A stretch of 64,000 nt of DNA, taken from the IMG/VR virus record IMGVR_UViG_3300023184_000025, positions 248,001-312,000 of that record. The stretch is one strand, 5' to 3'. Each line of letters opens with the position of its first letter. Within the stretch, counting starts at the first letter, position 1. The notes under the pieces are model-generated. The model had not been told where the DNA came from. It saw only the letters and a program-made list of their open reading frames with translations, and did not search any database. Shown piece by piece: positions 1,259 to 48,662 of this stretch. A program made the translations under genes and the position numbers.

Positions 1259-2350
1259 ATGAACGTTCTAATACTTACCCCCGATCGAGTAGGCTCTACT
1301 TTATTACAAAGATTGATAACAATCTACGCTAATGTCAATGAAAATTATGAGCCATTGACTATTAATTTACATGAGTTAACTAATGGCTTAGTGAGATACG
1401 ACCATGAAACATTTAATAGAAAAGTACTGGGCAAAAAAGCTGATGGTTGGGGATACCATCAAACTCTGCAGACTATTTCAGGATTAATTGACAATTGCGG
1501 CCATGATGTAGTAAGCCGTTTAGCTCACTATCATTTAAAAAATCGTAAAGATAACACAAGTGATCAATTGGCATTTTACAAATATCTCAATGAAAATTTT
1601 TATATTATTGCGGCCCGTCGAGAAAATTTATTTGAGCATGCAATGAGCTGGTGCATTGCGGTTGAGTCTAAAAAATTAAATGTATACTCGTTTGATGAAA
1701 AGTTTAAGACCTACAATGATATATTAAAAAATCCAGTTACCGTACAGGCTGAAATGATCAAGAAGTACCTAACACAGTACAGAGAATACATGGACTGGGT
1801 AGACAACCATTTTCAAGTCAACAGTTATTTTGAGTACGAACGTAATTTACCCAATATTGAAGAGTACATATTTAATTTAAGAGTTTTTCAAAAATATACA
1901 AAACCTCTTACCTGGGCCGACCGTTGGGACATATCCTGGAAGGATTGGAATCAAATGCATTACCTGTTAAGCTTAGTGCCGTTTGATCATAAATTTTCTC
2001 CTGACGAAACAAAATTTATGTCTGACAATATTGACTTATACACTCGGTGTAGGATAGACATACAAGACCTACAAGACCTAGGAGTGCTTGTGTCGGGAGT
2101 ACCTATCAAATTGCACACATTGCATCAGAAAACACAGTTAATTGCCAATGCTCCTGAATGTTTATTACACTATAATAATTGGGCACAACAAACCGCTGTG
2201 CCATATGCATTACCTTATACACCTGAACACATGACTCAAGTTGCAAAATTAGAACATGGTTTTTGGACTCAAGACAGTGGTAATCAACTGTCATACAACG
2301 ATATTAGTCACCAAAAATTACTTAACAGTGATCTAAAAGGATTTGAATGA
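1259..2350 (+). CDS. Sulfotransferase-like P-loop protein
   Basis: N-terminal TPDRVGSTLL, LHE, RRENLFEHAMSW resemble PAPS-binding motifs. Confidence 0.5.
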   Translation: MNVLILTPDRVGSTLLQRLITIYANVNENYEPLTINLHELTNGLVRYDHETFNRKVLGKKADGWGYHQTLQTISGLIDNCGHDVVSRLAHYHLKNRKDNTSDQLAFYKYLNENFYIIAARRENLFEHAMSWCIAVESKKLNVYSFDEKFKTYNDILKNPVTVQAEMIKKYLTQYREYMDWVDNHFQVNSYFEYERNLPNIEEYIFNLRVFQKYTKPLTWADRWDISWKDWNQMHYLLSLVPFDHKFSPDETKFMSDNIDLYTRCRIDIQDLQDLGVLVSGVPIKLHTLHQKTQLIANAPECLLHYNNWAQQTAVPYALPYTPEHMTQVAKLEHGFWTQDSGNQLSYNDISHQKLLNSDLKGFE

Positions 2351-4296
2351 TTATTGCATTTTATCCTGGAGCAGGCGGCAACAGGTATGCTCTAGCCCTA
2401 CAACAATCAATGGTGTTTGAGTCAAATCAAACGTATGATCATTTACTGAAGTCTCAAGATTTTGTCTATAGGTATTTAGAATCTGATACCATTGGTTTGA
2501 AAGATCAGGAATTAATACTCACACATTGTTTAAATGTTCCATTATTAAAATTGCATTTTCCTAATCAGACTGACATAGTAGTGATCATATCGGATCTTGA
2601 ATCTAGTTTAAAACGTGAATTTTATCTCGAAGACCAACACAGAGATAAAGACATGACAGACAAGGTTGAACATGCATTAGCACACATTAGCTTCCATTGT
2701 AGGTACTATAAACAATATCCAGTAAACTTAACCGGCGCTAGTTTAGTAATTGACATCAATAAAGACAACAGTGATTTTACCACAATGATGCGTAACGAAA
2801 TTAACAATATAGTTTGTGAAGAATACAACCAGGCCAGTAAACTTTATAATAAGTTACAACCACAAGATAGAGCAGACTTACCCGGGGATAAGATTGTTGA
2901 CGGTTTTAAATCTAAGTTTCTTGACGATGCTGAAAAAATGAGATTAGAACTAGATAAGTTTAGTCCTAGTTTGTGCTTGGCCAAATGGAAACAGGTTAGC
3001 CTGCACTTAGCAACAGGAATGAATAACAGTTGTTATCACCCGCCCTTGCATAAAATACCCATAGAAGAAATTGGACGTAATCCCGGAGCATTACACAATA
3101 CTCCATACAAGAAAGAACAACGTAAAATGATGCTCAACGGCGAGAGGCCCGCCGAATGTAGTTATTGTTGGACCATGGAAGATCTGGGCAAACTCAGTGA
3201 TAGACACTATCGCAGTGGGGAACCATGGGCCGCGATGGATTTTGGAAAAATTGTAAGTTCGGAGTGGAATGATGATTTTGTACCTAGTTATGTTGAAGTT
3301 AATTTTAATCATGCTTGTAATCTATCTTGTAGCTATTGCAGTCCACAATTTAGTAGTACTTGGCAGGCTGAAGTGGAACGCTCAGGTGGCTATCCTACTA
3401 CTACTATCCATAACGATCCTAGTTACTTCACTGGCAATAATCGACCTATACCCGCTAGTCATGAAAATCCTTATGTAGATGCTTTTTGGAAATGGTGGCC
3501 TACACTTTATCCGCAATTAAAACATTTCCGAATGACCGGTGGCGAGCCTTTGATGGATAAAAATACCTACAAGGTATTTGATTATGTATTAGCACTACCT
3601 AACCCTGAGTTGCACCTAAATGTAACCAGCAATTTCAGCGTAGAGCCGCAGTTATGGAACAAGTATTTTGATTATGTTAAAAAATTGTGCGACACTAACA
3701 TTGAACATTTTATGCAGTATGTTAGTTTAGATTCGGGTGTTTCTGAACATGCCGAATACATTCGCCATGGATTAAATTTTCATAGATTAAAAAGTAGAGT
3801 TAATCATTTCTTACACGATATTCCTAGCCGTAACAGTCTTACATTTATTATCACAATGAATAACCTCAGTGTGTTAGGACTAAAAAAACAACTTGAGTGG
3901 ATATTAGAACTACGAAAACAACATAGCAAGACATATCAACGTGTATGGTTTGACACACCATTACTCAGGCAGCCCACGTGGCAGAGCCTACAAATAATGC
4001 CTCCAGCGTATGCAGGCATACTTGAACGTACTGCTGACTGGATGGAACTTAATTTAGAAAACCCTAACGACCCATTTCACGGATTTAAAGACTACGAAGT
4101 ACAACGCCTTCGAAGAGACATTGCCTGGATGAAAGATGGACAGAAGTTGCAACAAGATTATGTTAATAAAAATCGTGCTGATTTCTATAGATTTTTTAAC
4201 GAACACGACGCTCGACGAGGAACAGATTTCTTAAAGACATTTCCAGAAATGTCAGATTGGTGGAAAGAATGCGAGTACCATGCTAGACAAACGTAA
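2347..4296 (+). CDS. Radical SAM enzyme (N-terminal Twitch/SPASM-like Cys cluster) fused to an extra N-terminal ~190-aa domain
   Basis: CNLSCSYC, TGGEP; upstream CLAKW..SCYH..CSYC; N-terminus IAFYPGAGGN. Confidence 0.85.
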   Translation: MIIAFYPGAGGNRYALALQQSMVFESNQTYDHLLKSQDFVYRYLESDTIGLKDQELILTHCLNVPLLKLHFPNQTDIVVIISDLESSLKREFYLEDQHRDKDMTDKVEHALAHISFHCRYYKQYPVNLTGASLVIDINKDNSDFTTMMRNEINNIVCEEYNQASKLYNKLQPQDRADLPGDKIVDGFKSKFLDDAEKMRLELDKFSPSLCLAKWKQVSLHLATGMNNSCYHPPLHKIPIEEIGRNPGALHNTPYKKEQRKMMLNGERPAECSYCWTMEDLGKLSDRHYRSGEPWAAMDFGKIVSSEWNDDFVPSYVEVNFNHACNLSCSYCSPQFSSTWQAEVERSGGYPTTTIHNDPSYFTGNNRPIPASHENPYVDAFWKWWPTLYPQLKHFRMTGGEPLMDKNTYKVFDYVLALPNPELHLNVTSNFSVEPQLWNKYFDYVKKLCDTNIEHFMQYVSLDSGVSEHAEYIRHGLNFHRLKSRVNHFLHDIPSRNSLTFIITMNNLSVLGLKKQLEWILELRKQHSKTYQRVWFDTPLLRQPTWQSLQIMPPAYAGILERTADWMELNLENPNDPFHGFKDYEVQRLRRDIAWMKDGQKLQQDYVNKNRADFYRFFNEHDARRGTDFLKTFPEMSDWWKECEYHARQT

Positions 4297-5422: not shown

Positions 5423-6758
5423 TTTAGAATTCCGCCAACAAATATTAGATACCAAAAGTTCTAGCTTCTGTGCGGCCAAATGGTACAATGCTACTATATG
5501 GCTAGGATCAGGCCAAACGACTAGCTGTCATCATCCGCCGGCACACGCTATTGATGTAGATGATATTAAACGCAACCCATCAGCGTTACATAACACACAG
5601 AGAAAAAAAGCCGATAGAGAAATGATGCAGAAAGGTGAGCGTCCTAGCGGTTGTGAATACTGCTGGAAAATTGAAGACATGGGCCGTGATGCTATTTCGG
5701 ACCGTGTGTACAAATCTCGAATATATCCTATAGAGGCATTACATGAAGCTTTCAATACCCCTGTCCATGAAGACGTTAATCTCAAAACTCTCGAAATTGC
5801 ATTCGATCGCACTTGCCAATTTGCTTGTAGTTATTGTAACCCTGCTTTCAGTAGCACATGGGTTAATGACATCAAAAAGCACGGCGCCTATACCGGCCTG
5901 GTGTCTGATGGGCGCAACCACTTTACTCATACTCACGATAGTTCTCAACTATACACGTTTAATCAAGCCAATCCTTACGTGGATGCGTTCTTTAAATGGT
6001 GGGAAACAGACCTACACCAAACACTACAAGAACTAAGAATCACTGGTGGCGAACCGTTGATGTCGGGTTATACTTGGAAATTGATTGAATGGTTCAAAAC
6101 AAACCAAGGTAAATCAACAACCAAGTTAGCTATCAACAGCAATCTGGGATTTGAACCTAACAAGCTTCAAGAGTTTATTGATGCTATACACACACTTCCG
6201 CATGTGGATCTATACACCAGCATGGAAGCAGTAGACACACAGGCCGAATATATTCGTGACGGACTTGACTATCAGCAATGGATCAACAATGTGCAATTGT
6301 TACTGGAGTCTGACTCCGTAAAGGCTGTGCATGTGATGTGTACCATTAACGCATTGTGCCTGGATAGTTTGCCTCGCTTGTTGTATCAATTGTTAGAATT
6401 CAAACAGATGTACGGCAGAGAGCGTGTGAATTTTACCTTGAATATACTGCGCTTCCCCAGCTTTCAATCACCATTGGTGCTGCCAGACCACCTACGTGCC
6501 CAGTGCAAGAACCAACTGATTGATTTCTTTGCACGTAATATCAACAACCCATATCTTCAAGAGCACGAAATCAATCATATACAACGATTGATTGACTATT
6601 TAGATATAGTTAAAACGCCGCACTCGGACACATTTGAAATGCCGGTGTTGCACAATGATTTCAAACAATTCTATTCGCAGTACGATGTTCGTAGATCGAA
6701 AGACTTTGTCAACACATTCCCCAATTTTAAAGAATGGTATGACTCAATACAAGTATAA
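5415..6758 (+). CDS. Radical SAM enzyme with N-terminal auxiliary Cys cluster
   Basis: CQFACSYC, TGGEP; CAAKW..SCHH..CEYC; start MNDLEF at 5415. Confidence 0.85.
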   Translation: MNDLEFRQQILDTKSSSFCAAKWYNATIWLGSGQTTSCHHPPAHAIDVDDIKRNPSALHNTQRKKADREMMQKGERPSGCEYCWKIEDMGRDAISDRVYKSRIYPIEALHEAFNTPVHEDVNLKTLEIAFDRTCQFACSYCNPAFSSTWVNDIKKHGAYTGLVSDGRNHFTHTHDSSQLYTFNQANPYVDAFFKWWETDLHQTLQELRITGGEPLMSGYTWKLIEWFKTNQGKSTTKLAINSNLGFEPNKLQEFIDAIHTLPHVDLYTSMEAVDTQAEYIRDGLDYQQWINNVQLLLESDSVKAVHVMCTINALCLDSLPRLLYQLLEFKQMYGRERVNFTLNILRFPSFQSPLVLPDHLRAQCKNQLIDFFARNINNPYLQEHEINHIQRLIDYLDIVKTPHSDTFEMPVLHNDFKQFYSQYDVRRSKDFVNTFPNFKEWYDSIQV

Positions 6759-8004
6759 CAGTACAGACCTAGTGCGTCCTACAGAACTCACCGAGCGTGA
6801 GCGTTTTCTATTAGAAGATTCTAAAACGTTCTGCATCTATCCCTGGATACATTTACACGCTTATCCCACCGGAGAAGCATATCCTTGCTGTCATGCTGAA
6901 ATGAAGCCCGGTGTTGTGGGTAATTGTCGCACAAACACACTAGAAGAAATATGGCGCGACAAACCCATGCAGAAACTACGTGCAGACATGTTGAGCGAAA
7001 CTCCACACGCCGCCTGCACACGCTGTTATGAACAAGAAGAGTCTGGATTCTTTAGTGGCCGCAAAAGCGCCAACAAGCATCACGGACATCAGATAAAGAA
7101 ACTGGAAGAAAATCCCTTTGAAATGACTTACTGGGACATTCGCTTTAGCAATTTGTGCAACTTAAAGTGCAGATCATGTGGACACATCTTTAGTTCACAG
7201 TGGTATCAAGACCAGGCCAAACTGGCCGGCGGTGATTGGAAAGATCGTAATACAGTACTAAACTATGCTGGCCGCACAGAAACAGACATGTGGACACAAT
7301 TAGAGCCTCATTTAGATTATGTAGAACAAATCTATTTTGCTGGTGGCGAGCCACTACTAATGGAAGAACACTACCGAATTCTAGATGAACTAGTGCGTCG
7401 CGGCCGCTTTGATGTACGTTTAATCTACAACACAAATTTTACACACACCGACCTTAAAGGTAATAGTGTATTTGAATACTGGAAACAATTTAATTCGGTG
7501 GCAGTTGGCGCAAGTCTAGATGCAATGGGACCACGTGCGGAGTACATACGCAAAGGCACTGATTGGGCAGTGGTAGAACAAAATCGCAGAGACATGATTG
7601 AGATCTGTCCAGGTGTAGATTTTTATATCAGTCCCACATTGAGTATTATGAATGCCATGCATTTAACACAATTCCATCGTGCATGGGTACAACAAGGCCT
7701 ACTAAAACCACAGGATCTTAATGTAAACATTTTACAAGATCCTGTGCATTATAGGATTGATATTGCCCCTGTTGAATACAAAGAGCGACTCACAGCACAG
7801 TATTATGATCATATCGAGTGGCTGACACAAGTAGGTGATCCGTTGGGTCGTGCCACACAAGGTTTTGAAAGTGCAATCACCTTTATGAATGCCATAGATA
7901 ACACACAGTTAATAGATCAATTTTGGCGTAAGACGCATGATTTGGACGGTATTAGAAACGAAAACATCTTGGATATCATCCCGGAACTAACAGCATTAAA
8001 ATGA
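6739..8004 (+). CDS. Radical SAM/SPASM(Twitch) enzyme
   Basis: CIYPW..PCC..CTRC then CNLKCRSC, AGGEP; start MTQYK at 6739. Confidence 0.88.
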   Translation: MTQYKYNSTDLVRPTELTERERFLLEDSKTFCIYPWIHLHAYPTGEAYPCCHAEMKPGVVGNCRTNTLEEIWRDKPMQKLRADMLSETPHAACTRCYEQEESGFFSGRKSANKHHGHQIKKLEENPFEMTYWDIRFSNLCNLKCRSCGHIFSSQWYQDQAKLAGGDWKDRNTVLNYAGRTETDMWTQLEPHLDYVEQIYFAGGEPLLMEEHYRILDELVRRGRFDVRLIYNTNFTHTDLKGNSVFEYWKQFNSVAVGASLDAMGPRAEYIRKGTDWAVVEQNRRDMIEICPGVDFYISPTLSIMNAMHLTQFHRAWVQQGLLKPQDLNVNILQDPVHYRIDIAPVEYKERLTAQYYDHIEWLTQVGDPLGRATQGFESAITFMNAIDNTQLIDQFWRKTHDLDGIRNENILDIIPELTALK

Positions 8005-9206
8005 ATTTACCACAGGATAAATTTTGTGTACTGCCTTGGATCAGCTTAGAAGCTAGTCCCATTGGTACTGTACGCCCTTGCTGTCTTGCTGAAGATGAGA
8101 TAGTTGATAATGCTGGTAATAAATTTGAATTAACCAAAGCTGACTTCGTTGAGATAAGAAATTCAGATTACATGAAAAATCTTAGACAGCAATTCCTAAC
8201 AGGACAAAAACCCGATACCTGTAAGAAGTGTTGGAATGAAGAAGATTCAGGTAGAACAAGTAAACGAATGCACACTATTGATCGATTAAAACATATTGTT
8301 GGCAATCAGTCCTGGAGCGAAGATGAAAAACCAATGATGTTCTTGGATTTAAAACTAGGAAATATCTGTAATCTTAAATGCCGTATATGTGGTTCGTGGT
8401 CATCAAGTTCGTATGCAACAGAAGAAATGATGGCTGTACCACACCAAGATCGTAAAAAAACATTTGCCTATCAGATGCTACGTGCTGGTAGTTGGCCAAG
8501 AGAAAATAAACAATTTTGGCAACAAATTGATCAATGCCTATCTGACATACACTATATAGAATTCACCGGTGGCGAACCTTTTATGATCAGCGAACATTTT
8601 GATATGTTACAAGGAATTGTAGACAGAGGAATTGCTGGACAAGTAGAGATACATTACAATACAAACGGAACCATAGTTCCTGAACGTGCGCCTGACATTT
8701 GGCGACACTTTAAAACAGTTGAAGTTGCATTTAGCATAGATGATATAGGACCACGATTTGAATACCAACGAATGAATGCCAACTGGAAAGACGTTAACAA
8801 AAATATTTCAGAATTTAAACGATTACAATCTACAATGCCAAACCTACAGTTACAATGCTGTAGTACTGTTAATGTTTTTAATGTACTATATCTTGAAGAG
8901 TTGGATGCATGGCACAAATTGGCTAATTTTGATTTTGTCTATTGGAATATGTTGCACGAAGCATATTATTTTAGCATAGGATCATTGCCCGAACTATCAA
9001 AACAATCTGTTAAACAAAAATTAGAAAGTACAGCAATCTCTGGCAGTACAAAACAGGAAGTTGAAAAAATTATTCAATTCATGATGCAAGGAACAAGTCT
9101 TGATGGTTCTTTGCTACGTGAAAAAATTAAAGAAATAGATCTACGAAGAAACCAGGATCTAAATCAACATCATTCAGAATTGTCTGACATAATTGACTAT
9201 GAATAA
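8001..9206 (+). CDS. Radical SAM/SPASM(Twitch) enzyme
   Basis: CVLPW..PCC..CKKC, CNLKCRIC, TGGEP. Confidence 0.88.
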   Translation: MNLPQDKFCVLPWISLEASPIGTVRPCCLAEDEIVDNAGNKFELTKADFVEIRNSDYMKNLRQQFLTGQKPDTCKKCWNEEDSGRTSKRMHTIDRLKHIVGNQSWSEDEKPMMFLDLKLGNICNLKCRICGSWSSSSYATEEMMAVPHQDRKKTFAYQMLRAGSWPRENKQFWQQIDQCLSDIHYIEFTGGEPFMISEHFDMLQGIVDRGIAGQVEIHYNTNGTIVPERAPDIWRHFKTVEVAFSIDDIGPRFEYQRMNANWKDVNKNISEFKRLQSTMPNLQLQCCSTVNVFNVLYLEELDAWHKLANFDFVYWNMLHEAYYFSIGSLPELSKQSVKQKLESTAISGSTKQEVEKIIQFMMQGTSLDGSLLREKIKEIDLRRNQDLNQHHSELSDIIDYE

Positions 9207-10497
9207 GCCCGAATCTTTGTGTATGGCACCATGGGTGCATACGTATTTAAGCCCACAAACAGAGCGCAGAATGTGCTGTGCTAGCCGTGAGCCTGCACAA
9301 AATTTTCAACAGTACATTGACACATCAGCAGGCACAGGAAAGTATATTCCACTCACACTAGATCAACACTGGAATAGTGATCATATGAAAAGTGTTAGAC
9401 AACGTATGATGGCAGGAGAAACTTTACAAGAATGTGACGTTTGTAATAGTAAACTGTTAAATACTGATGTCTATAGAACATATTTCTGGCACCTATTCAA
9501 ACATCGTTATGAAGAGGCCATGGAACAAACACAGCCCGACGGATCCACAACCATGAAACCAATAAGTTGGGATTATAGGTTTAGCAATCTTTGCAATTTC
9601 AAATGCCGTATGTGTGGGGATATGTTGTCTAGTAGTTGGGAAAGCGAAGAACGCCAACACAATCTTATTGACTATTCAGATCCACGAAATAACTGGATGA
9701 AGCCAGCAGTAAGAACAGAAATTAGCAAATTCCAAGACACACAGATTGAACAAGAGTTTGCACAGGCAGTTGAAGAACATCGTGTGGAAGAAGTTTATTG
9801 GGTCGGTGGAGAACCGTTGATGTATGAACAACATTGGCGGTATATGAAACGTATTATTGAATTAAATGATGGAGGCAGAGTATATGCTAGATATAACACT
9901 AATCTTAGCCGTGTTGATTATCGTGGCCGTAATCTCTATAGAGATATATTGGACCATATCAGGGACTGGCAGATATGCGCCAGCCTTGACGGAACAGGAC
10001 CCACGGGAGAATACATCCGCACAGGCTTGGAATATTCCACCTTCCTAAAAAACTTTAAACAGGGAGTTGAGATACAAAAACATCGCAGACAAATGCGAAT
10101 TGATTTTACACTCACATTGCCTGGACTATTCGAAGTAGACAATATACAGCAGTTATCAACCGAACTTGGTGTTGATATATTAGCCAAAGTAATTTTTAGT
10201 TTTAGCCCGGATATTATTATGAGTCCATTGGCATTGCCTCGTGAGTTACTAGACAGTACAGTAGATCGTCTAACAACTAACTTACCTCATGGTGCGTTGA
10301 AGGATGTGTTACTACAATTAAAATCACGACCAACTTTTGCAGAACAGTGGCCGGATACCTGGGAAAAAGGTCTTGCAAGAGGAAAGTTCAGAATGTTACA
10401 ATTAGAATCTATTAGAAATGATAAATTTGGGCTAGACCAAATACTACAACAGGACAATGAAATATATGGCTGGTGGAAAAATATTAGAACAGATTAA
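9193..10497 (+). CDS. Radical SAM/SPASM(Twitch) enzyme
   Basis: CMAPW..MCC..CDVC, CNFKCRMC, VGGEP. Confidence 0.88.
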   Translation: MTMNKPESLCMAPWVHTYLSPQTERRMCCASREPAQNFQQYIDTSAGTGKYIPLTLDQHWNSDHMKSVRQRMMAGETLQECDVCNSKLLNTDVYRTYFWHLFKHRYEEAMEQTQPDGSTTMKPISWDYRFSNLCNFKCRMCGDMLSSSWESEERQHNLIDYSDPRNNWMKPAVRTEISKFQDTQIEQEFAQAVEEHRVEEVYWVGGEPLMYEQHWRYMKRIIELNDGGRVYARYNTNLSRVDYRGRNLYRDILDHIRDWQICASLDGTGPTGEYIRTGLEYSTFLKNFKQGVEIQKHRRQMRIDFTLTLPGLFEVDNIQQLSTELGVDILAKVIFSFSPDIIMSPLALPRELLDSTVDRLTTNLPHGALKDVLLQLKSRPTFAEQWPDTWEKGLARGKFRMLQLESIRNDKFGLDQILQQDNEIYGWWKNIRTD

Positions 10498-11554
10498 AGT
10501 TGAACTTAAAAATAGAAACTTTGATAAACTTCACTCAGTTTATATTGACGTCTATGATAATTCGTTATCTCGTAAATGGTTAAATGCACTAAACGGGTTA
10601 TTAACAAACAACTCTCATTTAGAAAAAAATTTTTGTTTCTTAGGATTTACTCAAAGTCAGCGCAATGGGTGGTACATTCTTGAACAAGTAAACAAATCAA
10701 TAGATGCAATTAACCAGGCAAATATTGGATACGTCATTGATGATTATTTTACAATGGAAAACACTATCACCAATGATCCTGTAGGGTCAAGAACAGTTGG
10801 TAGGAATATGATTCATGAACGTTTAAATTGGTTGCATCGTTACTTTGAAGACCTGCAAGGTGTAAGCGGTAGCATGTCGGTTTATTTTAATCACGCCAGT
10901 GCTGACATACGTTGGCACATAAGACAATTAAATTTACTTTGTCATGAGTTTGAAACATGGGCATTAAGTTATCGTAAAGAAATAGAAGCACCCGAGTGGC
11001 AAAGACCCAGCCAACTAATGTGTTGGTTAAACGCACCAAGATTCACTCTTGACGAAAACGACTATGATTTATTTGGAGTTGAAACAATAAACCGCAGTCT
11101 TGGAGGAGTATTTGTTGGAGTCAACAAGGCAATTGGAAAACATCATTGGGAAGTATTCATGGATGAAGGCCGTGACAGTCGAGTTAGTGAATTAATCACT
11201 ACTTCTATGCGCAGTCAGACTGAAGCCGCTGGAGATTTTGATATTGAGTGGGCAAATAATCCAGGTAACCATAGCTGGCAACAAATTAAACTAGCTGAAT
11301 TTAAAGAGTGGTTACTGGTCAATGGGTTTGACCCCGATGATAAACTATTAACCATTGGACATCCTCAAGTGGGACAAGTAGATTTAAAACGTAGTTTTAA
11401 CACAGAAGATTACCTAACTATTTGGAATCAATTAAATAATAGTCTAGACGTATACAGCGTGAGTACTAGCAATAATTGTGCCGTATACGATTATCACTGG
11501 TCTGATTCAGACTTTATAGACCGTCAAATAAAAATAATTAATCGAAAGAACTAA
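10457..11554 (+). CDS. Hypothetical protein (LNWLHRYFE / LNLLCHEFE, possible metal-binding helices)
   Basis: Long ORF coupled within the operon; two HxxE-like motifs. Confidence 0.6.
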   Translation: MKYMAGGKILEQIKVELKNRNFDKLHSVYIDVYDNSLSRKWLNALNGLLTNNSHLEKNFCFLGFTQSQRNGWYILEQVNKSIDAINQANIGYVIDDYFTMENTITNDPVGSRTVGRNMIHERLNWLHRYFEDLQGVSGSMSVYFNHASADIRWHIRQLNLLCHEFETWALSYRKEIEAPEWQRPSQLMCWLNAPRFTLDENDYDLFGVETINRSLGGVFVGVNKAIGKHHWEVFMDEGRDSRVSELITTSMRSQTEAAGDFDIEWANNPGNHSWQQIKLAEFKEWLLVNGFDPDDKLLTIGHPQVGQVDLKRSFNTEDYLTIWNQLNNSLDVYSVSTSNNCAVYDYHWSDSDFIDRQIKIINRKN

Positions 11555-11555: not shown

Positions 11556-11657
11556 ATGAACTGGCTAAAAAATTTAATCAAACGAATTCGCATGGACATT
11601 CGTTATCGTAAAAAGCTAAACGAATTGCGTAACAAAAAGCCTTTTATATACTGGTAA
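11556..11657 (+). CDS. 33-aa basic peptide MNWLKNLIKRIRMDIRYRKKLNELRNKKPFIYW (copy A; not in ORF track)
   Basis: Translated by hand; TAATG overlap with next gene; paralog at 12175. Confidence 0.8.
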   Translation: MNWLKNLIKRIRMDIRYRKKLNELRNKKPFIYW

Positions 11658-12178
11658 TGAAACAGCAAATCGAACAAGACATTTGGCAATGGATAACCGA
11701 ATACATAGAAGTCAATCACGAATTCTATGCTCACAAGTTTCCGCCTTGCCCTTATGCACGTGGCGCAAGATTAAAAGGCAGTTTGGATGTTGTTGCCTGG
11801 ACTTCCGGTAATACTAGAATCTTTATTAATACACAAACTGCCGATTTGCTACTGTCTGACAAGACTGTGCGTGTAATGGTATTCCCTCCCAGTTTACGAT
11901 GGAATTGGTTAACACGCTGGCACATTGCAAATCTAAATAAAACTATGATTCCCCAGGACTACTATATACAATATGGCGGAGCTGTGGGAACTACTAGTAG
12001 ATACCCTGGATTGCCTGGTGCGTATGTAATTGTAATTATTAATCAATTGAGCGATGTACTAGCAGGGCACACCGCATTGAAATCTACTCCGTATTATCGC
12101 AACTGGAGCAACACACACTATCACAATGTTGTGGAGCGCAGACAAGATATGTATAATCGTTATAAGGATATAAAATGA
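11657..12178 (+). CDS. Hypothetical protein (PPCPYA motif)
   Basis: Translationally coupled to both flanking peptides. Confidence 0.65.
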   Translation: MKQQIEQDIWQWITEYIEVNHEFYAHKFPPCPYARGARLKGSLDVVAWTSGNTRIFINTQTADLLLSDKTVRVMVFPPSLRWNWLTRWHIANLNKTMIPQDYYIQYGGAVGTTSRYPGLPGAYVIVIINQLSDVLAGHTALKSTPYYRNWSNTHYHNVVERRQDMYNRYKDIK

Positions 12179-12276
12179 ACTGGTTAAAAAACTTAATCAA
12201 TAGAATTAAACTTGAAATAAGATATAGAAAAAAACTCAAAGAGTTGCGTAAACGAGATCCATTTATCTACAAATGA
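12175..12276 (+). CDS. 33-aa basic peptide MNWLKNLINRIKLEIRYRKKLKELRKRDPFIYK (copy B; not in ORF track)
   Basis: ATGA overlaps with both neighbours; paralog of 11556. Confidence 0.85.
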   Translation: MNWLKNLINRIKLEIRYRKKLKELRKRDPFIYK

Positions 12277-13769
12277 AAAAATATTTAGGTATAAGTGCTG
12301 GATTCCATGATGCCGCTGTGTCTGTGATCACGGGTCACGGCGATATTTTATTTGCTGGTCACGCCGAACGCTACAGTAAAAACAAGCATGACCCTCATAT
12401 CAATCAAGACCTAATGGCCGAGGCATTGTTGCATGGTGAGCCGGATGTTGTTGCTTTTTACGAAAAACCTTGGCTTAAAAAGCTGAGAAACTTTTATGCA
12501 GGACAATATAATGAAGCATTGGATTTTACCGATATTACTGTTTGTAAGTATTTGCATAAACATGTACCTATATCTTTTCATAAGAAGCCACTATTTTTAC
12601 ATGCTGGACATCATTTGTCCCATGCTGCCGCAGGATTCCAAACCAGCCCCTTTACCAAGGCCACCGTTGTCGTTATAGATGCTATAGGAGAATGGGATAC
12701 TATTAGCATATGGGCCGCAACATATAATAGCAGTAATCAAGCAACATACAAAAAACTATGGAGTCAGAAGTATCCGCACAGTATTGGATTGTTTTATAGT
12801 GCAATTACTAAACGGATTGGACTACATCCAATGGATGAAGAATATATTACAATGGGTATGTCCGCCTGGGGCCGCTCTGTGTGGTATAATAAAATGAATT
12901 ATGATCTTGTTGCAGACCTTGATAAAATAGAATTTAAAAATAATTTACATCTTGGTCTGGATTCAACGTATTTAGAAGCTGGAACTAACGAAGACATTGC
13001 CGCATCAGCACAAGAATTAGTTGAAGAGTTAATTGGAAATGTAATGAAACTTGCCAGATCTTTTAACTGGAGCAATAATCTTGTTTATATGGGCGGTGTT
13101 GCTCTTAACTGTTTGGCAAATCGTAACCTAGGAGAATATTTTGAAAACATTTGGATTATGCCTAACCCTGGTGATGCTGGTAGTAGTCTCGGCGCTGCCG
13201 CTTATGCCTATCGTGGTAAAATCAATTGGAATAACGCTTATCTTGGCAGTGATATTAGCGGACCTTATCCTGTTAATGATATTATTGATGAGTTACTTTC
13301 TAGACAAATTGTCGGCGTGGCTTCCGGAAGAGCAGAGTTTGGTCCTAGAGCACTTGGCAACCGCAGTCTACTGGCAGACCCAAGAGGTTCCGAAATCAAG
13401 GACAAAGTAAATGAAATTAAACGTAGACAAAAGTTCAGACCATTTGCCCCAGTTATGTTGGAGGAACATGTTGATATGTATTTTGACATGCCTTGCGGTT
13501 TCAGTAACAGTAGGTATATGCAAGTCATCAGTCGCTGTAGGCATCCTGAGTTATTTCCTGCTATCATTCATCGGGATGGGACTAGTCGTGTTCAAACAGT
13601 ACCGCGAGATGGCTCAGGAATTAGACAGCTACTAGAAGCTTGGTATGCAAAGACTGGATGCCCGATGTTGCTTAATACCAGCTTAAATGTTAGAGGAGAG
13701 CCCATGGTAAATGACAGAGTAGACGCTGATCGTTTTGAATACCTTTATGGAGTTAAAGTATGCAGTTGA
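12273..13769 (+). CDS. O-carbamoyltransferase (CmcH/NodU/TobZ family)
   Basis: HDAA, AERY, HHLSHAA, GGVALNC, EFGPRALGNRS, RPFAP, LNTSLN. Confidence 0.95.
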   Translation: MKKYLGISAGFHDAAVSVITGHGDILFAGHAERYSKNKHDPHINQDLMAEALLHGEPDVVAFYEKPWLKKLRNFYAGQYNEALDFTDITVCKYLHKHVPISFHKKPLFLHAGHHLSHAAAGFQTSPFTKATVVVIDAIGEWDTISIWAATYNSSNQATYKKLWSQKYPHSIGLFYSAITKRIGLHPMDEEYITMGMSAWGRSVWYNKMNYDLVADLDKIEFKNNLHLGLDSTYLEAGTNEDIAASAQELVEELIGNVMKLARSFNWSNNLVYMGGVALNCLANRNLGEYFENIWIMPNPGDAGSSLGAAAYAYRGKINWNNAYLGSDISGPYPVNDIIDELLSRQIVGVASGRAEFGPRALGNRSLLADPRGSEIKDKVNEIKRRQKFRPFAPVMLEEHVDMYFDMPCGFSNSRYMQVISRCRHPELFPAIIHRDGTSRVQTVPRDGSGIRQLLEAWYAKTGCPMLLNTSLNVRGEPMVNDRVDADRFEYLYGVKVCS

Positions 13770-19800: not shown

Positions 19801-21430
19801 GTTTGATATATTCTATATAGGAAAAAAACCAGGGTTATTTGTGCATGAATGTGCAGTAACAAGCACGGAGCAGGCCTGTGAACTGAGTCGCACTCGATAT
19901 TGTTGGGTTGTAAATTACTTATCGAGCTATTCAGAGTTTAATTTTCTTTGGGAGCCGTCGCCCTGGCAAGCAAATCAACAACATGTATTTCCTAGTCAGT
20001 GGCAAAAAGACTCAGGTACATATCTAGTACCAAAAACTGGATTCACAGATATCAATTACCGCACAGACATGGTTGTTCAGACTAGACAATCTAGTGATGT
20101 ATACTTAATAGATCATATGGATAATTCTCTAGAATTGTCATTGAATACTCTGTCAGAAAAAATCACAATTAAAAAAGTGGTTAGATATTTTGACAATTAT
20201 CTTGACACTCTAACACGCATTGCTAAAACAGCCAACAATGACAATCTTGAATACGTTTGGATTTGCTCTACAATTTGTGATTATACTAATTTTGACTTTA
20301 CATGGCATCCTGATCCTTGGCAAAAAGAGTTGTTACATGTATTTCCTAGTAATGAACAAAAGTTTGGTGACACATTTTTAATGCATGTGCCAACGTTTAT
20401 TGAAAGAATCAAGGGTAGAGAATTACTTGAGTGGTATGATTTAAATTTTGTTGATTTACAGATCAAACGTAATCCAGTTCCAATAATTCAACATTCCTGT
20501 GACACACAAGTTACTGCACTAGATCCTGACTCTTTTTATGGTCCAGTAGGATTGTTTACTGTTCAAAATCCTCCAGCGGTGTACCCAACTGTTAATCTAT
20601 GGAGAGAACGAACCAAGACAGTTATTACATTGTCCCCAAACAACGATTGTGCGTTGATTCCACGAACAGCATTGTCTACAATCAACGCACAAGTCTACGA
20701 TTATCCGTACATTGATAAAACTCAGATTAGTCAAGATCTTGCATTGCAAGATATTGTGTTTATTAGCTACGACGAACCCGAAGCTGATGCAAACTATGAA
20801 AAATTGTTAACAAAATTTCCTCGAGCAAAACGTGTGCATGGCGTGGTTGGAATGGAAAATGCTCTGGCCGAAGCCGCTAGAGTTAGTCAAACACCTTGGT
20901 ACTTTGCAGTATTTGGAAAGACAGAGTTACACCCTGATTTTGATTTTACATTCCAACCAGACTATTTCCAACAACCTAAACATTATATCTTTTACAGCGA
21001 GAATCGTGTAAACAAATTGGTCTACGGAGAAATGGCTGTTATTATGTACAATTGCAATCTTATATTAGATAACATTGGCCAGGAATTTGGGTTAGATTAT
21101 ACAATGAGTTTCCCACACGAGGTTGTGCCAGTTATTAGCACCTATGGTAATTTTAACACAAGTCCATATCAAACCTGGAGAACTGCATTCAGAGAAGTCA
21201 GTAAATTATATGATATACAGTCTCGAACGCCAACAATTGAAACTGATTATAGAATTAATATTTGGGAAACAGTCGCCGACGGCAACTATGCTGAGTGGGC
21301 ATTGATAGGAGCCAAAGATGGCCGAGAATTTTATCTAGCATACAAAGATAACTATGAATACAGAAAAAATAGTTTTGACTGGCAATGGTTAAGAAATTAT
21401 TTTTCTGAACGTTACGGCAACGTTAGTTAA
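19799..21430 (+). CDS. Phage glycosyltransferase-like protein with three internal repeats
   Basis: Repeats FNFLWEPSPWQ..HVFPS / FDFTWHPDPWQ..HVFPS / FDFTFQPDYFQ; DIVFISYDEP. Confidence 0.5.
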   Translation: MFDIFYIGKKPGLFVHECAVTSTEQACELSRTRYCWVVNYLSSYSEFNFLWEPSPWQANQQHVFPSQWQKDSGTYLVPKTGFTDINYRTDMVVQTRQSSDVYLIDHMDNSLELSLNTLSEKITIKKVVRYFDNYLDTLTRIAKTANNDNLEYVWICSTICDYTNFDFTWHPDPWQKELLHVFPSNEQKFGDTFLMHVPTFIERIKGRELLEWYDLNFVDLQIKRNPVPIIQHSCDTQVTALDPDSFYGPVGLFTVQNPPAVYPTVNLWRERTKTVITLSPNNDCALIPRTALSTINAQVYDYPYIDKTQISQDLALQDIVFISYDEPEADANYEKLLTKFPRAKRVHGVVGMENALAEAARVSQTPWYFAVFGKTELHPDFDFTFQPDYFQQPKHYIFYSENRVNKLVYGEMAVIMYNCNLILDNIGQEFGLDYTMSFPHEVVPVISTYGNFNTSPYQTWRTAFREVSKLYDIQSRTPTIETDYRINIWETVADGNYAEWALIGAKDGREFYLAYKDNYEYRKNSFDWQWLRNYFSERYGNVS

Positions 21431-22541
21431 AAAAATCCATTACAGCTCTGGCCACAATTTCTGCCTGTGCAGTGGTAATTTGTGCATGCACTGGTAAACT
21501 CAAGCATGAGTCTGCTAGCCTTTCACTATTTGGAAAACTATCTGGGCCTGATACCCTAACATACACTGGTTGTTTATGTAACGCTAATGGAAATTGTATA
21601 CCAGTTTCAATTCCACGACTCAGAAGAAATTCTTTTAATTCATTTCTACGATCTGTTGCAATAACAAATTGATTATACACGTGAGTACTCACATCACTGT
21701 TTACTTTTGGTAATTGTATTTTATCACAACTTGATAAAATATTGTAATAAACAGATGCATTCTCTGTACGTCGTTGATTCCAGGTATCTAAGTGATCTAG
21801 TTTGGCTGATAAAATTGCTGCCTGCATAGAATCTAGTCTTTCATTCCAGCCAATGGTCTCGTGTACGTATTTTTCTTTTCTTCCATGATCTCTAAGCATT
21901 TTAACAATTTTAACTAATTCTTGACGGCCTGTAACTGCACCTGCATCTCCCATGGCACTTAAATTTTTTCCTGGATAAAAACTAAAACATGTTAAATCTG
22001 CTTGGCTGCCAATTGAATTTCCAAGGTATTTACATCCTGAACTCTGAGCCGCATCTTGTATGATTGGAATGCCGTTGGCGATTTTTTTGAGCTTTTTCAT
22101 ATCCACGGTTTGACCATACAGATCCACCACAATAATTGCTTTGGTTTTATTTGTAAGTGTTGATTCAATTTGATCAAGGTCCATGGTATAGTATTGATCA
22201 ATGTCGATAAAACGAGGACGAGCACTTAGTTGACTAGCGCACTCAGCTGACGCAACAAAGCTCATACTTGGAACAAGTACTTCGTCAGCAGGACGAACTC
22301 CTACTGCCCATAGACATAGCATTAACGCACTGGTTCCACTGCTTACACCTGCGCAGTCTTCGGATTGGGTATAGTCTTTCCAGGCAGTTTCAAAATTCAA
22401 AACTTCTTCCCCGCCAATAAATGAACTGTTGGTAATGCAACGTTCAATAGCCTGATCAACAGGAGTTTTTACTTCTAGGTATTCGCTATATAAATTTGCG
22501 TATGGTATTGTTATCGGCATTTTACTGGTCCTTGGTTCCAC
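21423..22541 (-). CDS. DegT/DnrJ/EryC1/StrS PLP sugar aminotransferase (DesV/EryCI-like)
   Basis: SSGTSAL, DAAQS, SFYPGKNLSAMGDAG, NERLDSMQAA. Confidence 0.93.
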   Translation of the reverse strand: MEPRTSKMPITIPYANLYSEYLEVKTPVDQAIERCITNSSFIGGEEVLNFETAWKDYTQSEDCAGVSSGTSALMLCLWAVGVRPADEVLVPSMSFVASAECASQLSARPRFIDIDQYYTMDLDQIESTLTNKTKAIIVVDLYGQTVDMKKLKKIANGIPIIQDAAQSSGCKYLGNSIGSQADLTCFSFYPGKNLSAMGDAGAVTGRQELVKIVKMLRDHGRKEKYVHETIGWNERLDSMQAAILSAKLDHLDTWNQRRTENASVYYNILSSCDKIQLPKVNSDVSTHVYNQFVIATDRRNELKEFLLSRGIETGIQFPLALHKQPVYVRVSGPDSFPNSERLADSCLSLPVHAQITTAQAEIVARAVMDFFN

Positions 22542-39825: not shown

Positions 39826-39922
39826 TTTTATTTTCCTTAAAAAAAGAATGAGTTTTAAATCATTCACTATTATGTATCAGTGTTTGCAACAATGTTAATT
39901 AAAATTGGGGGTATTTTGGTCC

Positions 39923-39947
39923 AAAAAAAACCCGCCGAAGCGGGTTC
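39923..39947 (-). terminator. Intrinsic terminator ending the tmRNA
   Basis: aacccgc-ttcg-gcgggtt + U-tract. Confidence 0.9.
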
Positions 39948-39949
39948 TG

Positions 39950-40222
39950 AGTTTCTGTTACGAGGTATGTCTTACCCTAGACGGCTTTTATCAAGCTGCC
40001 AATGCGAACTGTTCGTCGTTTGCGTTTACGTTTTTTGCTTGATTTACGGTCATCGCCTACCGTGCTGTCCACTCTGTTACTCTTTGCCCTGTCAAAACCA
40101 TGCTCACCCCCGACAAGAATATACTAACCTAGTATACTCTTGGTGGAAGTGCCGGGGCTCGAACCCGGGTCCAAGACAACTTTCTCTTCGCCTCTTCCCT
40201 TTCGGGGTTTACAGCAATATTC
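39950..40222 (-). ncRNA. ssrA: tmRNA, circularly permuted (two-piece); tag ANDEQFALAA
   Basis: T-arm/acceptor ..GGGTTCGAGCCCCGGCACTTCCACCA (ends 40141) precedes 5' GGGGGTG (40111); G3:U70 pair; tag ORF 40023-39991. Confidence 0.93.
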
Positions 40223-40855
40223 TTATTTAATCAATCTACGCTTTTGTAAATTCAATTCTGCTATTTTAGCATCGTCTGGCTTTAGATAGTAATTCTTCTC
40301 ACCATCGTTATACCAGTGTCTACCAAACGCATTGTTGTTTTTATTCTTGCGTAGTTGAGTCCATTCAATTGTTGTTATCCAACCTTCTGGAATTTGTTCT
40401 TTATTATACTTTTTGCGTGATGACAAGTCAACCGCATCTTTACCCACACACCAAACTTTTCCAAACTGCGAATTGTTTTCTTTCTGTTGGTGTTGCTTTT
40501 CAGCAAAGGTCTTCTTACGCTTTTCCATTGCTGAGTCAGTGTTTGCCAAATCACACACCTTCTTTTGATGTTCTTTGTTTACAGAAAAATTGTGTTCAGT
40601 GCGAATACCTGTAAATGGATTTGGGTGTAGTTGATGACGCAACTTTCCCGCTTCTCGTTGTCTTATTCTTACTAATTCTTCTTTTGGGCTTAACTTTGCT
40701 AAACCCTGCCACGCAACATAATCTTGCCAACGACCATATTCTTCATATAACTTGCGATGTGCTTCTGCGTGGTCATCAACAGATAATTCTACAAGATTGC
40801 TTGGATCGTCTGTTCCGCCTGCGTGTTTAGGAATAATATGATGTTTGTGGCTCAT
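40223..40855 (-). CDS. HNH homing endonuclease
   Basis: HHIIPKHAGGTDDPSNLVELSVDDHAEAH; C-terminal repeat modules; TATAAATA upstream. Confidence 0.85.
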   Translation of the reverse strand: MSHKHHIIPKHAGGTDDPSNLVELSVDDHAEAHRKLYEEYGRWQDYVAWQGLAKLSPKEELVRIRQREAGKLRHQLHPNPFTGIRTEHNFSVNKEHQKKVCDLANTDSAMEKRKKTFAEKQHQQKENNSQFGKVWCVGKDAVDLSSRKKYNKEQIPEGWITTIEWTQLRKNKNNNAFGRHWYNDGEKNYYLKPDDAKIAELNLQKRRLIK

Positions 40856-45607: not shown

Positions 45608-45682
45608 TGGCCGGTCCTGAGAGGATCGAACTCCCACCCTCTGTTTCGAAGACAGAGATGATATCCATTTCACCAAGGACCG
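45608..45682 (-). tRNA. tRNA-Arg(TCG)
   Basis: Cloverleaf, loop ctTCGaa, CCA encoded. Confidence 0.9.
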
Positions 45683-45685
45683 ATG

Positions 45686-45759
45686 TGGTGCTCTCAACAA
45701 GAATTGAACTTGTGTTTCGCCCTTACCAAGGGCGTGTAATGCCATTATACTATGAGAGC
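45686..45759 (-). tRNA. tRNA-Thr(GGT)
   Basis: Cloverleaf, loop ttGGTaa. Confidence 0.9.
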
Positions 45760-45800
45760 AGAATTTGTAATATTGATAAAGTTTTAATGTAAATAAAAAC

Positions 45801-46526
45801 ATGCCTAATTATGATTCCTTTTATAAAAATCTTGCTAACAAAACTGTAGACTGGTTGCCCATGGACACTGAAGAATTATACAAGAAAAATCTTGACAAAC
45901 GCCACGGTGATCTAGTACTACAGGGCTGGATAGATAATCACTTTACATATGAATTTAACTCACATGGGTTTAGGTGTAAAGAGTTTACCGACAAACCTAG
46001 TATCATGTTTCTTGGATGTAGTTTTACAATGGGTATGGGATTACCTGTAGACTTAATTTGGCCTGAGTTAGTATCAAAGAATCTAAATTTACAATGTGTT
46101 AATCTTGGCATTGCCGGCTCCTCTGCTGATACAGCATTTAGGTTATGCCATGGATGGCTAGATAAAATTAATCCAAACACAGTTATTTTTATGCAACCCC
46201 CGGGCATAAGATGTGAACTGGTAACCGACGATAGTATTAAAAATGTAGATATTGAAGATCCATCAACAAAAGAGTTTATCAAACTTTGGACAGTAGACGA
46301 AAATAATAATTATTTCAACACTGAAAAAAATACATTAGGTATACAAATGCTGTGTACTGCCAAAGGAATCAAGTTTGTTACAGTTAATGCTAACACACTC
46401 ACATCAAGCTACTCTAATTCATTTGGTAGAGACCTTTGCCATCCGGGCATTGACAGGCATCGAGTTTTTGCTGAACGATTGTCAATGAAGCTTGGAGCGG
46501 GTAGAGAGAATCGAACTCTCAACTAA
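45801..46526 (+). CDS. SGNH-like protein (paralog of 534-1244), antisense to tRNA array
   Basis: YEFNSHGFR, LGCSFT, NLGIAGSS, RDLCHPG. Confidence 0.7.
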   Translation: MPNYDSFYKNLANKTVDWLPMDTEELYKKNLDKRHGDLVLQGWIDNHFTYEFNSHGFRCKEFTDKPSIMFLGCSFTMGMGLPVDLIWPELVSKNLNLQCVNLGIAGSSADTAFRLCHGWLDKINPNTVIFMQPPGIRCELVTDDSIKNVDIEDPSTKEFIKLWTVDENNNYFNTEKNTLGIQMLCTAKGIKFVTVNANTLTSSYSNSFGRDLCHPGIDRHRVFAERLSMKLGAGRENRTLN

Positions 46527-46566
46527 ACCTTGGCAAGGTCTCGGGTTACCATTACACCATACCCGC
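46493..46566 (-). tRNA. tRNA-Gly(GCC)
   Basis: Cloverleaf, loop ttGCCaa. Confidence 0.9.
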
Positions 46567-46576
46567 ATTAAATAAC

Positions 46577-47047
46577 TCAAGCTACTTTTAAAGTTTTGAA
46601 ACGATCAGCGGCATAGCTTGCGGCAAATGCGTTGGGTTTAACAAACGGTACAACATTACATGTTCCTTTAATATAGCCAATAGCCTGGCTAATAACACAG
46701 CTAGATCCATACTGATCATCAGGGTTAATGTCCAAGTGGACTTGAACCTGTCTACCTTCAAATACATCTGCTAGCTTTAGGTACAACTCGCTAACTTTAT
46801 ACACTTCGGACATGAGGCGCATTGCTGGCCTATTGACTTTGTGATCGTAATCACGTTCACGTTGTACCTCACCAAATAACTTACAACCGTTATTTCCGTT
46901 AATGTGTACAACAATAGCCAAGACGTAGTCAGCATACCACTGACCGTCAACACGCATACGTTCAGAATCACAGCCTAGATAAATTTTAGTATCTGGCCCT
47001 TGCGCTTCAATAAAGCTCTTGATTTCTTCTAGATTAATTTTTTTCAT
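46577..47047 (-). CDS. RNase H-like YkuK/DUF458 family protein
   Basis: IYLGCDS, RLMSEV, VHLDIN, KPNAFAASYAAD. Confidence 0.85.
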   Translation of the reverse strand: MKKINLEEIKSFIEAQGPDTKIYLGCDSERMRVDGQWYADYVLAIVVHINGNNGCKLFGEVQRERDYDHKVNRPAMRLMSEVYKVSELYLKLADVFEGRQVQVHLDINPDDQYGSSCVISQAIGYIKGTCNVVPFVKPNAFAASYAADRFKTLKVA

Positions 47048-47058
47048 GATTACCTCAG

Positions 47059-47838: not shown

Positions 47839-47871
47839 GATGCTTCCTTTGTTCTATTATATATGCTAAAT

Positions 47872-47948
47872 TGGTGCCCCAGAGGAGACTCGAACTCCTA
47901 AAATTTGGCTTCTAAGACCAACACGTATACCAATTCCGTCACCGGGGC
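47872..47948 (-). tRNA. tRNA-Leu(TAG) with short variable loop
   Basis: Loop ctTAGaa; 77 nt, no long V-arm. Confidence 0.85.
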
Positions 47949-48111
47949 TTTAAATACAGTATGATTAATTGTAACACATCTACTGATATATTGTATGAGA
48001 AATTGGCAAAACAGTCTTATATTTCTCCAACTTACCATAGCACACATCGTGTGTTTGTTCCTGATCCACTGCTGAATACACCCAAACCTAAGTTTATTCC
48101 TGATCCATTAT

Positions 48112-48187
48112 TGGTACCAAGAGACGGGATCGAACCGTCCACACCCGGATTTTCAGTCCGGTGCTCTACCAACTGAGCTATCTTGGC
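48112..48187 (-). tRNA. tRNA-Phe(GAA)
   Basis: Cloverleaf. Confidence 0.93.
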
Positions 48188-48189
48188 AT

Positions 48190-48265
48190 TGGGGTAACTA
48201 ATGGGAATCGAACCCATATTAACGGAATCACAATCCGTGGTGTTAACCTTTACACTATAGTCACC
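48190..48265 (-). tRNA. tRNA-His(GTG)
   Basis: Cloverleaf, G-1:C73. Confidence 0.92.
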
Positions 48266-48270
48266 ATAGA

Positions 48271-48659: not shown

Positions 48660-48662
48660 TGA

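Follow-up and report, generated by a model that had tools for sequence, protein, structure and literature searches.

Two PFIY-tailed mini-proteins in a freshwater jumbo phage and their predicted pairing with a carbamoyltransferase and a putative haem protein

We analysed a 64,000-nucleotide stretch of DNA (the window), comprising bases 248001–312000 of the 345,154-bp virus record IMGVR_UViG_3300023184_000025 (99% complete), which represents a 345-kb freshwater jumbo phage found in lake and freshwater metagenomes from several studies. Two peptides, hereafter copies A and B, are encoded on either side of a gene for a 173-residue protein and ahead of a carbamoyltransferase gene (Table 1). The coordinates confirm this arrangement as described in an earlier note made from the letters of the DNA alone, and the stop/start coupling of both peptides is likewise borne out by the junctions, which read TAATG between copy A and the 173-residue gene, ATGA between the latter and copy B, and ATGA again between copy B and the carbamoyltransferase gene, the start of which falls within the stop codon of copy B. 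The open reading frame (ORF) of the 365-residue protein stops 1 nt ahead of copy A, and no alternative genetic code is needed for reading the region. Used as a query, copy A recovers copy B in the phage genome with an E-value of 5.5e-12 and 75% identity, and exactly two copies are present; the likeness of the two peptides is above chance, and they are paralogous, as had been supposed. Among their 33 codon pairs, 13 are identical, 11 synonymous (CGN/AGA and CTA/TTA switches included), and 9 non-synonymous. Of the previous description 'basic amphipathic', the first word stands (net charge, +9 each) and the second does not, the helical hydrophobic moment of the peptides being matched by 26–61% of shuffled sequences. 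'Unannotated' is correct with respect to function; as ORFs, the peptides are predicted by gene callers, always under the name 'hypothetical protein'.

Table 1. Coordinates of the two peptide ORFs and the adjoining genes in the window
Feature	Position	Strand	Characteristics
365-residue protein	10457-11554	+	matches no family; recurrent gene upstream of the peptide–carbamoyltransferase pair
Peptide A	11556-11657	+	33 aa; net charge +9; tail KKPFIYW; subfamily preceding the 173-residue gene
173-residue protein	11657-12178	+	invariant motif FPPCPYA (Cys31); putative remote relative of the thiolate-haem P422/DUF6875 family
Peptide B	12175-12276	+	33 aa; net charge +9; near-invariant tail KELRKRDPFIYK, ends PFIYK; carbamoyltransferase subfamily
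Class III carbamoyltransferase (NodU/TobZ/GdmN-type), 498 aa	12273-13769	+	Pfam domains; conserved catalytic and metal-binding residues

Both ORFs encode genuine members of a large phage mini-protein family that has no name. A family profile (A3), built from 25 peptides of related loci and searched against 1.84 billion protein representatives, retrieved 185 clusters at E ≤ 0.001, and in nearly all of them the match ended at the last residue of the protein. The members, found mostly in phages and in a few bacteria, are composed of about 33 residues, with a strongly basic helix followed by a C-terminal P-[F/Y]-I-Y and zero or one further residue. Pro, Ile, and Tyr are the invariant positions of the tail; the last residue is variable, usually Lys, and several members stop at the Tyr. 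The tail is the best-conserved part of the peptide, and the whole C-terminal half is conserved, its exposed basic residues included. No Pfam, NCBIfam, or PHROG model matches peptide A or B, and any name given to the 262 members of the 90%-identity cluster of copy B is 'hypothetical protein'. Selection on the protein, suspected before from synonymous codon differences, is evident from a 12-residue stretch outside the DNA pattern used to find the loci, which is identical in 13 loci and encoded there by 13 distinct nucleotide versions (mean, 7 of 36 positions differing, all synonymously); the three population variants listed within copy B are also all synonymous. A tblastn search of 50,697 GenBank phages with peptide B and the 173-residue protein gave no matches, the copy in Ralstonia phage RsoM2USA described below having been seen on reading its locus, and nothing relevant was found in the literature on the tail motifs.

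Some variation on this theme was observed. Rare relatives of 51 residues (L099 and L124) have a hydrophobic segment at the N-terminus, and tandem double peptide units in a single frame occur in the metagenomic ORFs P0039 (75 aa) and P0042 (59 aa). In the five genomes with both copies (the window, L003, L007, L012, and L015), the N-terminal halves of the two ORFs (11556–11603 and 12175–12222 in the window) have a nucleotide identity of 0.74 within a genome versus 0.62–0.63 across genomes; being closer within than between genomes, the copies suggest gene conversion or repeated duplication. Many lake-metagenome contigs of other phages pile up on positions 12224–12337 of the window, covering the final codons of copy B and the initial ones of the carbamoyltransferase gene, and diverge right past the stop, this junction being the most conserved stretch of the region.

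The subfamily to which copy B belongs, with the tail RKRDPFIYK, is conserved next to carbamoyltransferase genes, as the earlier note had expected. Peptide loci were found with the tail as a DNA pattern, and the counts made from the peptide side hold among the matches listed: of 75 loci with an ORF downstream of the peptide, 47 have a carbamoyltransferase gene directly in that position and 12 an SGNH/DUF6071-like gene, mostly with an ATGA overlap. Other enzymes encoded downstream of family peptides are a nucleotidyltransferase and a hexapeptide transferase. From the enzyme side, 59 of 78 viral carbamoyltransferases surveyed have a peptide within 2 kb upstream as detected with a hidden Markov model, and 8 more have divergent adjacent copies (67 of 78). 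A second peptide copy with a near-invariant tail is found only where a carbamoyltransferase is present, that is, in the five genomes named above. The common layout consists of the 365-residue gene, the peptide, and the carbamoyltransferase gene (e.g., L095, L097, L138, L145, L167, L209, and L210), and the same order is seen in two contigs of Haliscomenobacter metagenome-assembled genomes. Relative to this layout, the window has an extra unit of a peptide plus the 173-residue gene in between, so that the suggestion of the duplication marking an insertion of the 173-residue gene was partly right. The closest cultured relative of the carbamoyltransferase is the product of gene 199 (46% identical) of the 344-kb Ralstonia jumbo phage RsoM2USA (MG752970.1), in which an unannotated peptide ending in DPFIYK (L216:4014-4136) precedes gene 200 (SGNH-like) and gene 199. 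In several phage lineages the peptide is located between primase and helicase genes. In Streptomyces loci for nonribosomal peptide synthetases (NRPSs), a small ORF ending in SYIYD follows the carbamoyltransferase gene (48% identical; L214:4253-4417 and L215:1655-1819). It is flanked by an NRPS gene and by a gene read from sequence alone as amidinotransferase-like, a bacterial natural-product context for such a pairing.

The carbamoyltransferase of the window contains the Pfam domains Carbam_trans_N (E, 7.8e-36) and Carbam_trans_C (E, 1.5e-47), and weakly matches the HypF model. Its catalytic His12 and metal ligands His113, His117, and Asp136, corresponding to H27, H133, H137, and D156 of GdmN, show no variation among 31 sequences, and there is conservation of the subfamily motifs AGQ (76–78) and NLHLG (224–228). 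Co-folding of this enzyme with peptide B, using alignment A4 of the former (31 rows) and A3 of the latter, gave interface scores (ipSAE, interaction prediction score from aligned errors) of 0.62, 0.76, and 0.68 in three runs. The resulting score of 0.68, the best of three controls having given 0.00, agrees with the interaction for which this check had been proposed. Of 80 solved complexes, 58 reach this value, as do 2 of 110 mismatched pairs, a calibration that is approximate here because both alignments were self-made. The predicted local distance difference test (pLDDT) score of the partners was at least 79, and at least 95% of the contacts were common to the runs. Peptide B makes contacts through residues 9, 13, 14, 16, 17, 20, 21, and 24, which line one face of the helix, and through residues 29–33 of the tail; those on the enzyme are residues 11, 76–78, 81, 137–138, 168, 173, 176–177, 180, 186–187, 214, and 222–228. 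When mapped by sequence alignment onto the definition of the GdmN pocket, these patches correspond to loop 1, helix 1, loop 2, helix 2, loop 3, and loop 4', that is, all six elements of the acceptor pocket, and border the residues equivalent to the catalytic base (H12 = H27) and an Fe ligand (D136 = D156). Two of the patches coincide with sequence motifs, [AS]GQ (76–78) and N-x-H-x-G (224–228), common to the peptide-bearing enzymes; both motifs are absent from four cultured cyanophage and pelagiphage enzymes without the peptide, and likewise from the enzymes linked to DUF5989 proteins (see below). The co-occurrence of the interface motifs with the peptide provides independent support for the complex, in which copy B is predicted to bind the carbamoyltransferase with its tail in the acceptor pocket.

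The earlier note had considered both peptides alike as a possible accessory subunit of the carbamoyltransferase; copy A, however, goes with the 173-residue gene. In a survey of 38 homologues of the 173-residue protein and 80 viral loci, a family peptide was encoded upstream of the homologue, either directly or before an intervening S-adenosylmethionine (SAM) methyltransferase gene, in 29 of the 31 assessable close homologues. Most of these loci have no carbamoyltransferase gene in reach; five contigs with the peptide and the 173-residue gene that were searched for one cover 6–17% of their genomes, too little to judge the absence of a carbamoyltransferase. The typical gene order is primase, peptide, methyltransferase, 173-residue protein, and DnaB helicase, and the trio of peptide, methyltransferase, and 173-residue protein is found in L011, L013, L022, and L026. 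In an unbiased scan for the acidic PYIYK tail, which yielded 21 stretches, the downstream gene was that of the 173-residue protein in 14, a lone SGNH-like gene in 5, and a carbamoyltransferase gene in 1. From this linkage we infer that copy A pairs with the 173-residue protein and not with the carbamoyltransferase. At one locus (L030:3143-4243), a SAM methyltransferase is fused to the 173-residue protein and a separate peptide is absent. The C-termini CPFHF of this fusion and CPFHRF of another homologue (L026:4995-5555) loosely resemble the peptide tail, and may possibly represent a tail in cis.

The structure model of the 173-residue protein (pLDDT, 87) consists of an N-terminal helix, a Cys-Pro loop, and a four-stranded α/β sandwich, features that appear to resemble those of P422/YqcI/YcgG enzymes such as AglA. 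DUF6875 proteins have recently been described as cytochrome P422, thiolate-haem enzymes that modify tryptophan and have a conserved Cys-Pro loop. The best match of the model among PDB structures was AglA itself, with a Z-score of 6.2 over 142 residues, a value common by chance; a Foldseek search against the PDB found nothing at E ≤ 0.001, and searching PDB sequences with a profile yielded no usable match. Its neighbours in the structure atlas were viral clusters, some of them DUF6875 or DUF1415, at template modelling (TM) scores of 0.64–0.76, with 0.64–0.72 for the DUF6875 and DUF1415 clusters. In profile–profile comparison with hhalign, the invariant Cys31 was aligned to the haem cysteine of P422/DUF6875 with 66.7% probability (E, 5e-5), and the values through an intermediate viral group were 76% and 99.3%. 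Against PF21780 (cut-off, 24.5 bits), the protein of the window gave no match, 7 of 37 homologues scored below the threshold (best E, 0.0075), and more distant viral relatives reached 16–18 bits. The 173-residue protein is thus probably P422-like, a remote relative rather than a member of the family, for which haem binding is predicted. It differs from P422/DUF6875 in that neither the R-x-G of the haem motif nor the substrate motifs are recognisable, and in belonging to a viral clade that has its own invariant FPPCPYA and is paired with the peptide and often with the SAM methyltransferase. A second viral clade (L035–L088), composed of well-conserved proteins of ~160 residues with the motif FPPCPYARSARLK and 26–28% identity to the 173-residue protein, has no family peptide nearby and bridges to DUF6875 in the profile comparisons.

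These observations can be accommodated by a model to which we give tentative preference, with less than even confidence, in which the mini-protein is a docking peptide and its invariant tyrosine is the acceptor for the enzyme encoded behind it. Each copy would be devoted to the tailoring enzyme whose translation follows its own, copy B to the carbamoyltransferase and copy A to the 173-residue P422/DUF6875-like, probably haem-binding protein. One face of the helix would dock on the enzyme, feeding the tail into the acceptor-substrate pocket beside the catalytic histidine and the metal site, where the carbamoyltransferase would O-carbamoylate the invariant tyrosine; copy A would have its tyrosine oxidised by the 173-residue enzyme. 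On this view, the peptide would act as a substrate or group carrier rather than an inert subunit. Tyrosine is assumed to be the acceptor because it never varies and stands last or next to last in the peptide, because the predicted tail reaches the catalytic centre, because the homologous HypF carbamoylates a tail cysteine of HypE, and because a phenol is a plausible common target of all the enzyme types that follow the peptides.

The covalent modification of tyrosine is suggested here by analogy, and the closest parallel is the HypF–HypE pair. HypF, a carbamoyltransferase of the YrdC-like plus Kae1-like superfamily, carbamoylates the last residue of the HypE tail P-R-I-C, to be compared with P-F-I-Y with or without one further residue in the present peptides, whose enzyme belongs to the same superfamily. 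In contrast to the cysteine sulphur of HypE, however, the acceptor here would be a tyrosine oxygen; the partner is a peptide of 33 residues instead of an ATPase of 330, and no hydrogenase genes are present. A broader version of the model, in which the peptides constitute a widespread phage class of ribosomal carriers or substrates whose near-C-terminal tyrosine is carbamoylated, hydroxylated, methylated, or acylated by the next-encoded enzyme, the carbamoyl group possibly being relayed to the SGNH serine or a host target, seems to us unlikely. O-Carbamoyl-tyrosine is an aryl carbamate and could therefore donate its carbamoyl group, either to a host target or to the SGNH partner's serine. If this version were true, the peptide, SGNH enzyme, and carbamoyltransferase would together make up a carbamoyl relay, and the long-unexplained SxtK-type proteins would obtain a first testable function.

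Several points weigh against the tyrosine-acceptor model. The co-fold output came without coordinates, so that Tyr32 is assigned to the catalytic centre by elimination; the self-made alignments render the calibration rough, and models often place hydrophobic tails in clefts. The conservation of the whole C-terminal half together with its exposed basic residues fits a permanent subunit or a third partner, and a substrate common to the enzymes would not usually come with a separate peptide subfamily for each of them. Both in saxitoxin biosynthesis and at the Streptomyces NRPS loci, the expected acceptor of the carbamoyltransferase is a small molecule. For copy A, the haem assignment of the 173-residue protein is weak, the hhalign probabilities being 67–76% with no Pfam match above the cut-off.

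The chief alternative is a passive accessory or specificity subunit similar to SxtK, which without being modified itself would bind non-covalently and either form a lining or gate of the acceptor pocket or anchor the enzyme to the membrane or an anionic target; we regard this as a serious possibility, albeit one that we are inclined to doubt. The passing co-fold of copy B, the interface motifs that accompany the peptide, the exposed basic residues, and the enzyme-specific subfamilies are all compatible with such a subunit, and so are the 51-residue relatives with their hydrophobic N-terminal segment. It also has precedents in gene context and literature, namely the small PFIY-tailed DUF5989 proteins, which adjoin carbamoyltransferases at each of 15 Bacteroidota loci, the proposal that SxtI acts with SxtJ and SxtK on a small molecule, and the Streptomyces enzyme with its SYIYD-ending ORF. 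On the other hand, the predicted contacts span all six elements of the acceptor pocket, leaving little room for another acceptor, and the class III enzymes TobZ, NovN, and GdmN work without a subunit of this kind. One and the same tail would, moreover, need to suit enzymes as unrelated as the SGNH protein, the methyltransferase, the 173-residue protein, the nucleotidyltransferase, and the hexapeptide transferase. The previous idea of an accessory subunit of the carbamoyltransferase fits copy B, which is strongly linked to this enzyme and predicted to bind it, and does not fit copy A, whose probable partner is the 173-residue protein.

The comparison with SxtK and DUF5989 deserves a closer description, since the earlier note had brought up that type for the peptides. 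The gene sxtK is listed as unknown in the literature, beside sxtI, sxtJ, and the GDSL gene sxtL. True DUF5989 members were found in 44 of 121 sampled Bacteroidota genomes, and in 15 of 15 loci they directly follow a carbamoyltransferase gene, the product of which is 30–36% identical to that of the window. They are proteins of 49 residues (range, about 49–54), with a basic N-terminal helix, a hydrophobic stretch of ~17 residues, and the tail PFIYTLF, so the statement that such proteins end in PFIY and adjoin carbamoyltransferases was right. The phage peptides themselves do not match the family model: PF19451 (cut-off, 27 bits), which scores 70–94 bits on the Bacteroidota genes, found nothing at E ≤ 10 in the Pfam scan or in the six-frame search of the whole phage genome. 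No true DUF5989 member was found in four bacterial genomes holding close relatives of the carbamoyltransferase. The copy B subfamily and SxtK/DUF5989 have in common a small protein beside a NodU/SxtI-type carbamoyltransferase, a basic N-terminal helix, a C-terminal PFIY (PFIYW and PFIYK here versus PFIYTLF), and often a GDSL/SGNH gene alongside (sxtL in the sxt cluster; a DUF6071-like gene in L007 and RsoM2USA). The phage peptides, however, have 33 residues and no hydrophobic run or transmembrane helix as opposed to 49 residues with one, and precede the enzyme instead of following it; the enzymes linked to DUF5989 lack the interface motifs, and the phage family pairs with other enzymes as well, the copy A subfamily also occurring without a carbamoyltransferase nearby. 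By the positive-inside rule, the DUF5989 tail would be placed across the membrane from the enzyme, so that the tail-in-pocket model would not be simply transferable. As judged from the sequences, the resemblance is real in the tail and gene context, and membership fails on the family model, length, transmembrane helix, and gene order.

It is improbable that the peptides are independent of the enzymes, either as upstream ORFs that set translation or as co-transcribed basic peptides binding membranes or nucleic acids. The stop/start overlaps with whichever enzyme comes next, the net positive charge, and the location between primase and helicase genes in several phage lineages would agree with this explanation; however, amino-acid conservation over the full tail with free synonymous change exceeds what a coupling device needs, both kinds of co-fold controls scored 0.00, and the predicted interface contains enzyme motifs that are specific to the subfamily.

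Still less probable is the proposal that the peptides are precursors of ribosomally synthesized and post-translationally modified peptides (RiPPs) processed by the neighbouring radical SAM and tryptophan-halogenase-like enzymes. Several N-terminal-twitch radical SAM genes are indeed located upstream in the clusters bearing the carbamoyltransferase, copy A ends in Trp, and tryptophan is the substrate of P422 enzymes, which are found together with halogenases in thienodolin clusters. In the wider comparison the link proposed in the earlier note finds no backing: among the matches listed, radical SAM genes directly adjoin the peptide in 1 of 75 positions downstream and 1 of 38 upstream (2 of ~113), and a halogenase is encoded only in the phage of the window among the loci compared. 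The peptide, in addition, has its most conserved part at the C-terminus and not in a leader, and its last residue is usually Lys and sometimes absent. The connection between the halogenase and the terminal Trp was rejected on the same comparative grounds, such a Trp being confined to the window and to L003, a locus without a halogenase gene within 6 kb, and the last residue being variable. Known RiPP systems such as cittilin, which comprises a peptide, a P450, and a methyltransferase, resemble the present loci in the short ORF directly upstream of modifying-type enzymes, in the C-terminal aromatic-Ile-Tyr, and in the trio of peptide, methyltransferase, and putative haem enzyme in the four loci mentioned above; they differ in that the tail, rather than a leader, is the most conserved part here and each enzyme has its own peptide subfamily. 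No recurrent protease, transporter, or RiPP recognition element was found among the peptide neighbours surveyed, a single Peptidase_S11 gene occurring in L003 only. Chance ORFs or a non-coding repeat, which the very short length and AT-rich DNA might suggest, are ruled out for practical purposes by a family of 185 clusters among 1.84 billion proteins, the constant length of ~33 residues, and nucleotide variation that is synonymous.

The small PFIY-tailed proteins beside carbamoyltransferases (SxtK/DUF5989) have been without a function since they were first listed as 'unknown', and the question now becomes testable. The phage family is the easier one to test, being soluble, short, and abundant, with a concrete prediction of the tail in the pocket and possibly a 43-Da mass gain at a single tyrosine, and with a cultured phage, RsoM2USA, that has an unannotated copy. 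What is new is a mini-protein family of at least 185 clusters, present in no family library, and a putative viral, peptide-paired branch of the thiolate-haem P422 superfamily represented by the 173-residue protein. If the tyrosine is modified, there would be peptide-directed carbamoyltransferases in phages, which could explain the common 'Nol-like' auxiliary genes of large phages.

In the surroundings of the locus, three consecutive genes for N-terminal-twitch radical SAM enzymes (6634–8004, 8001–9206, and 9193–10497, + strand) precede the 365-residue gene, a fourth, weak radical SAM gene is located at 2347–4296 (+), and a gene for a DegT-type aminotransferase lies opposite at 21423–22541. Together, these genes constitute a large tailoring island. 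Farther along the window, a transfer-messenger RNA (tmRNA) gene is found at 39900–40269 (− strand), with the best Rfam matches to beta_tmRNA (120 bits) and permuted tmRNA (112 bits); its betaproteobacterial type hints at a betaproteobacterial host. In addition, 28 tRNA genes, representing nearly every amino acid, are encoded on the − strand at 45608–52178 and 59751–59992.

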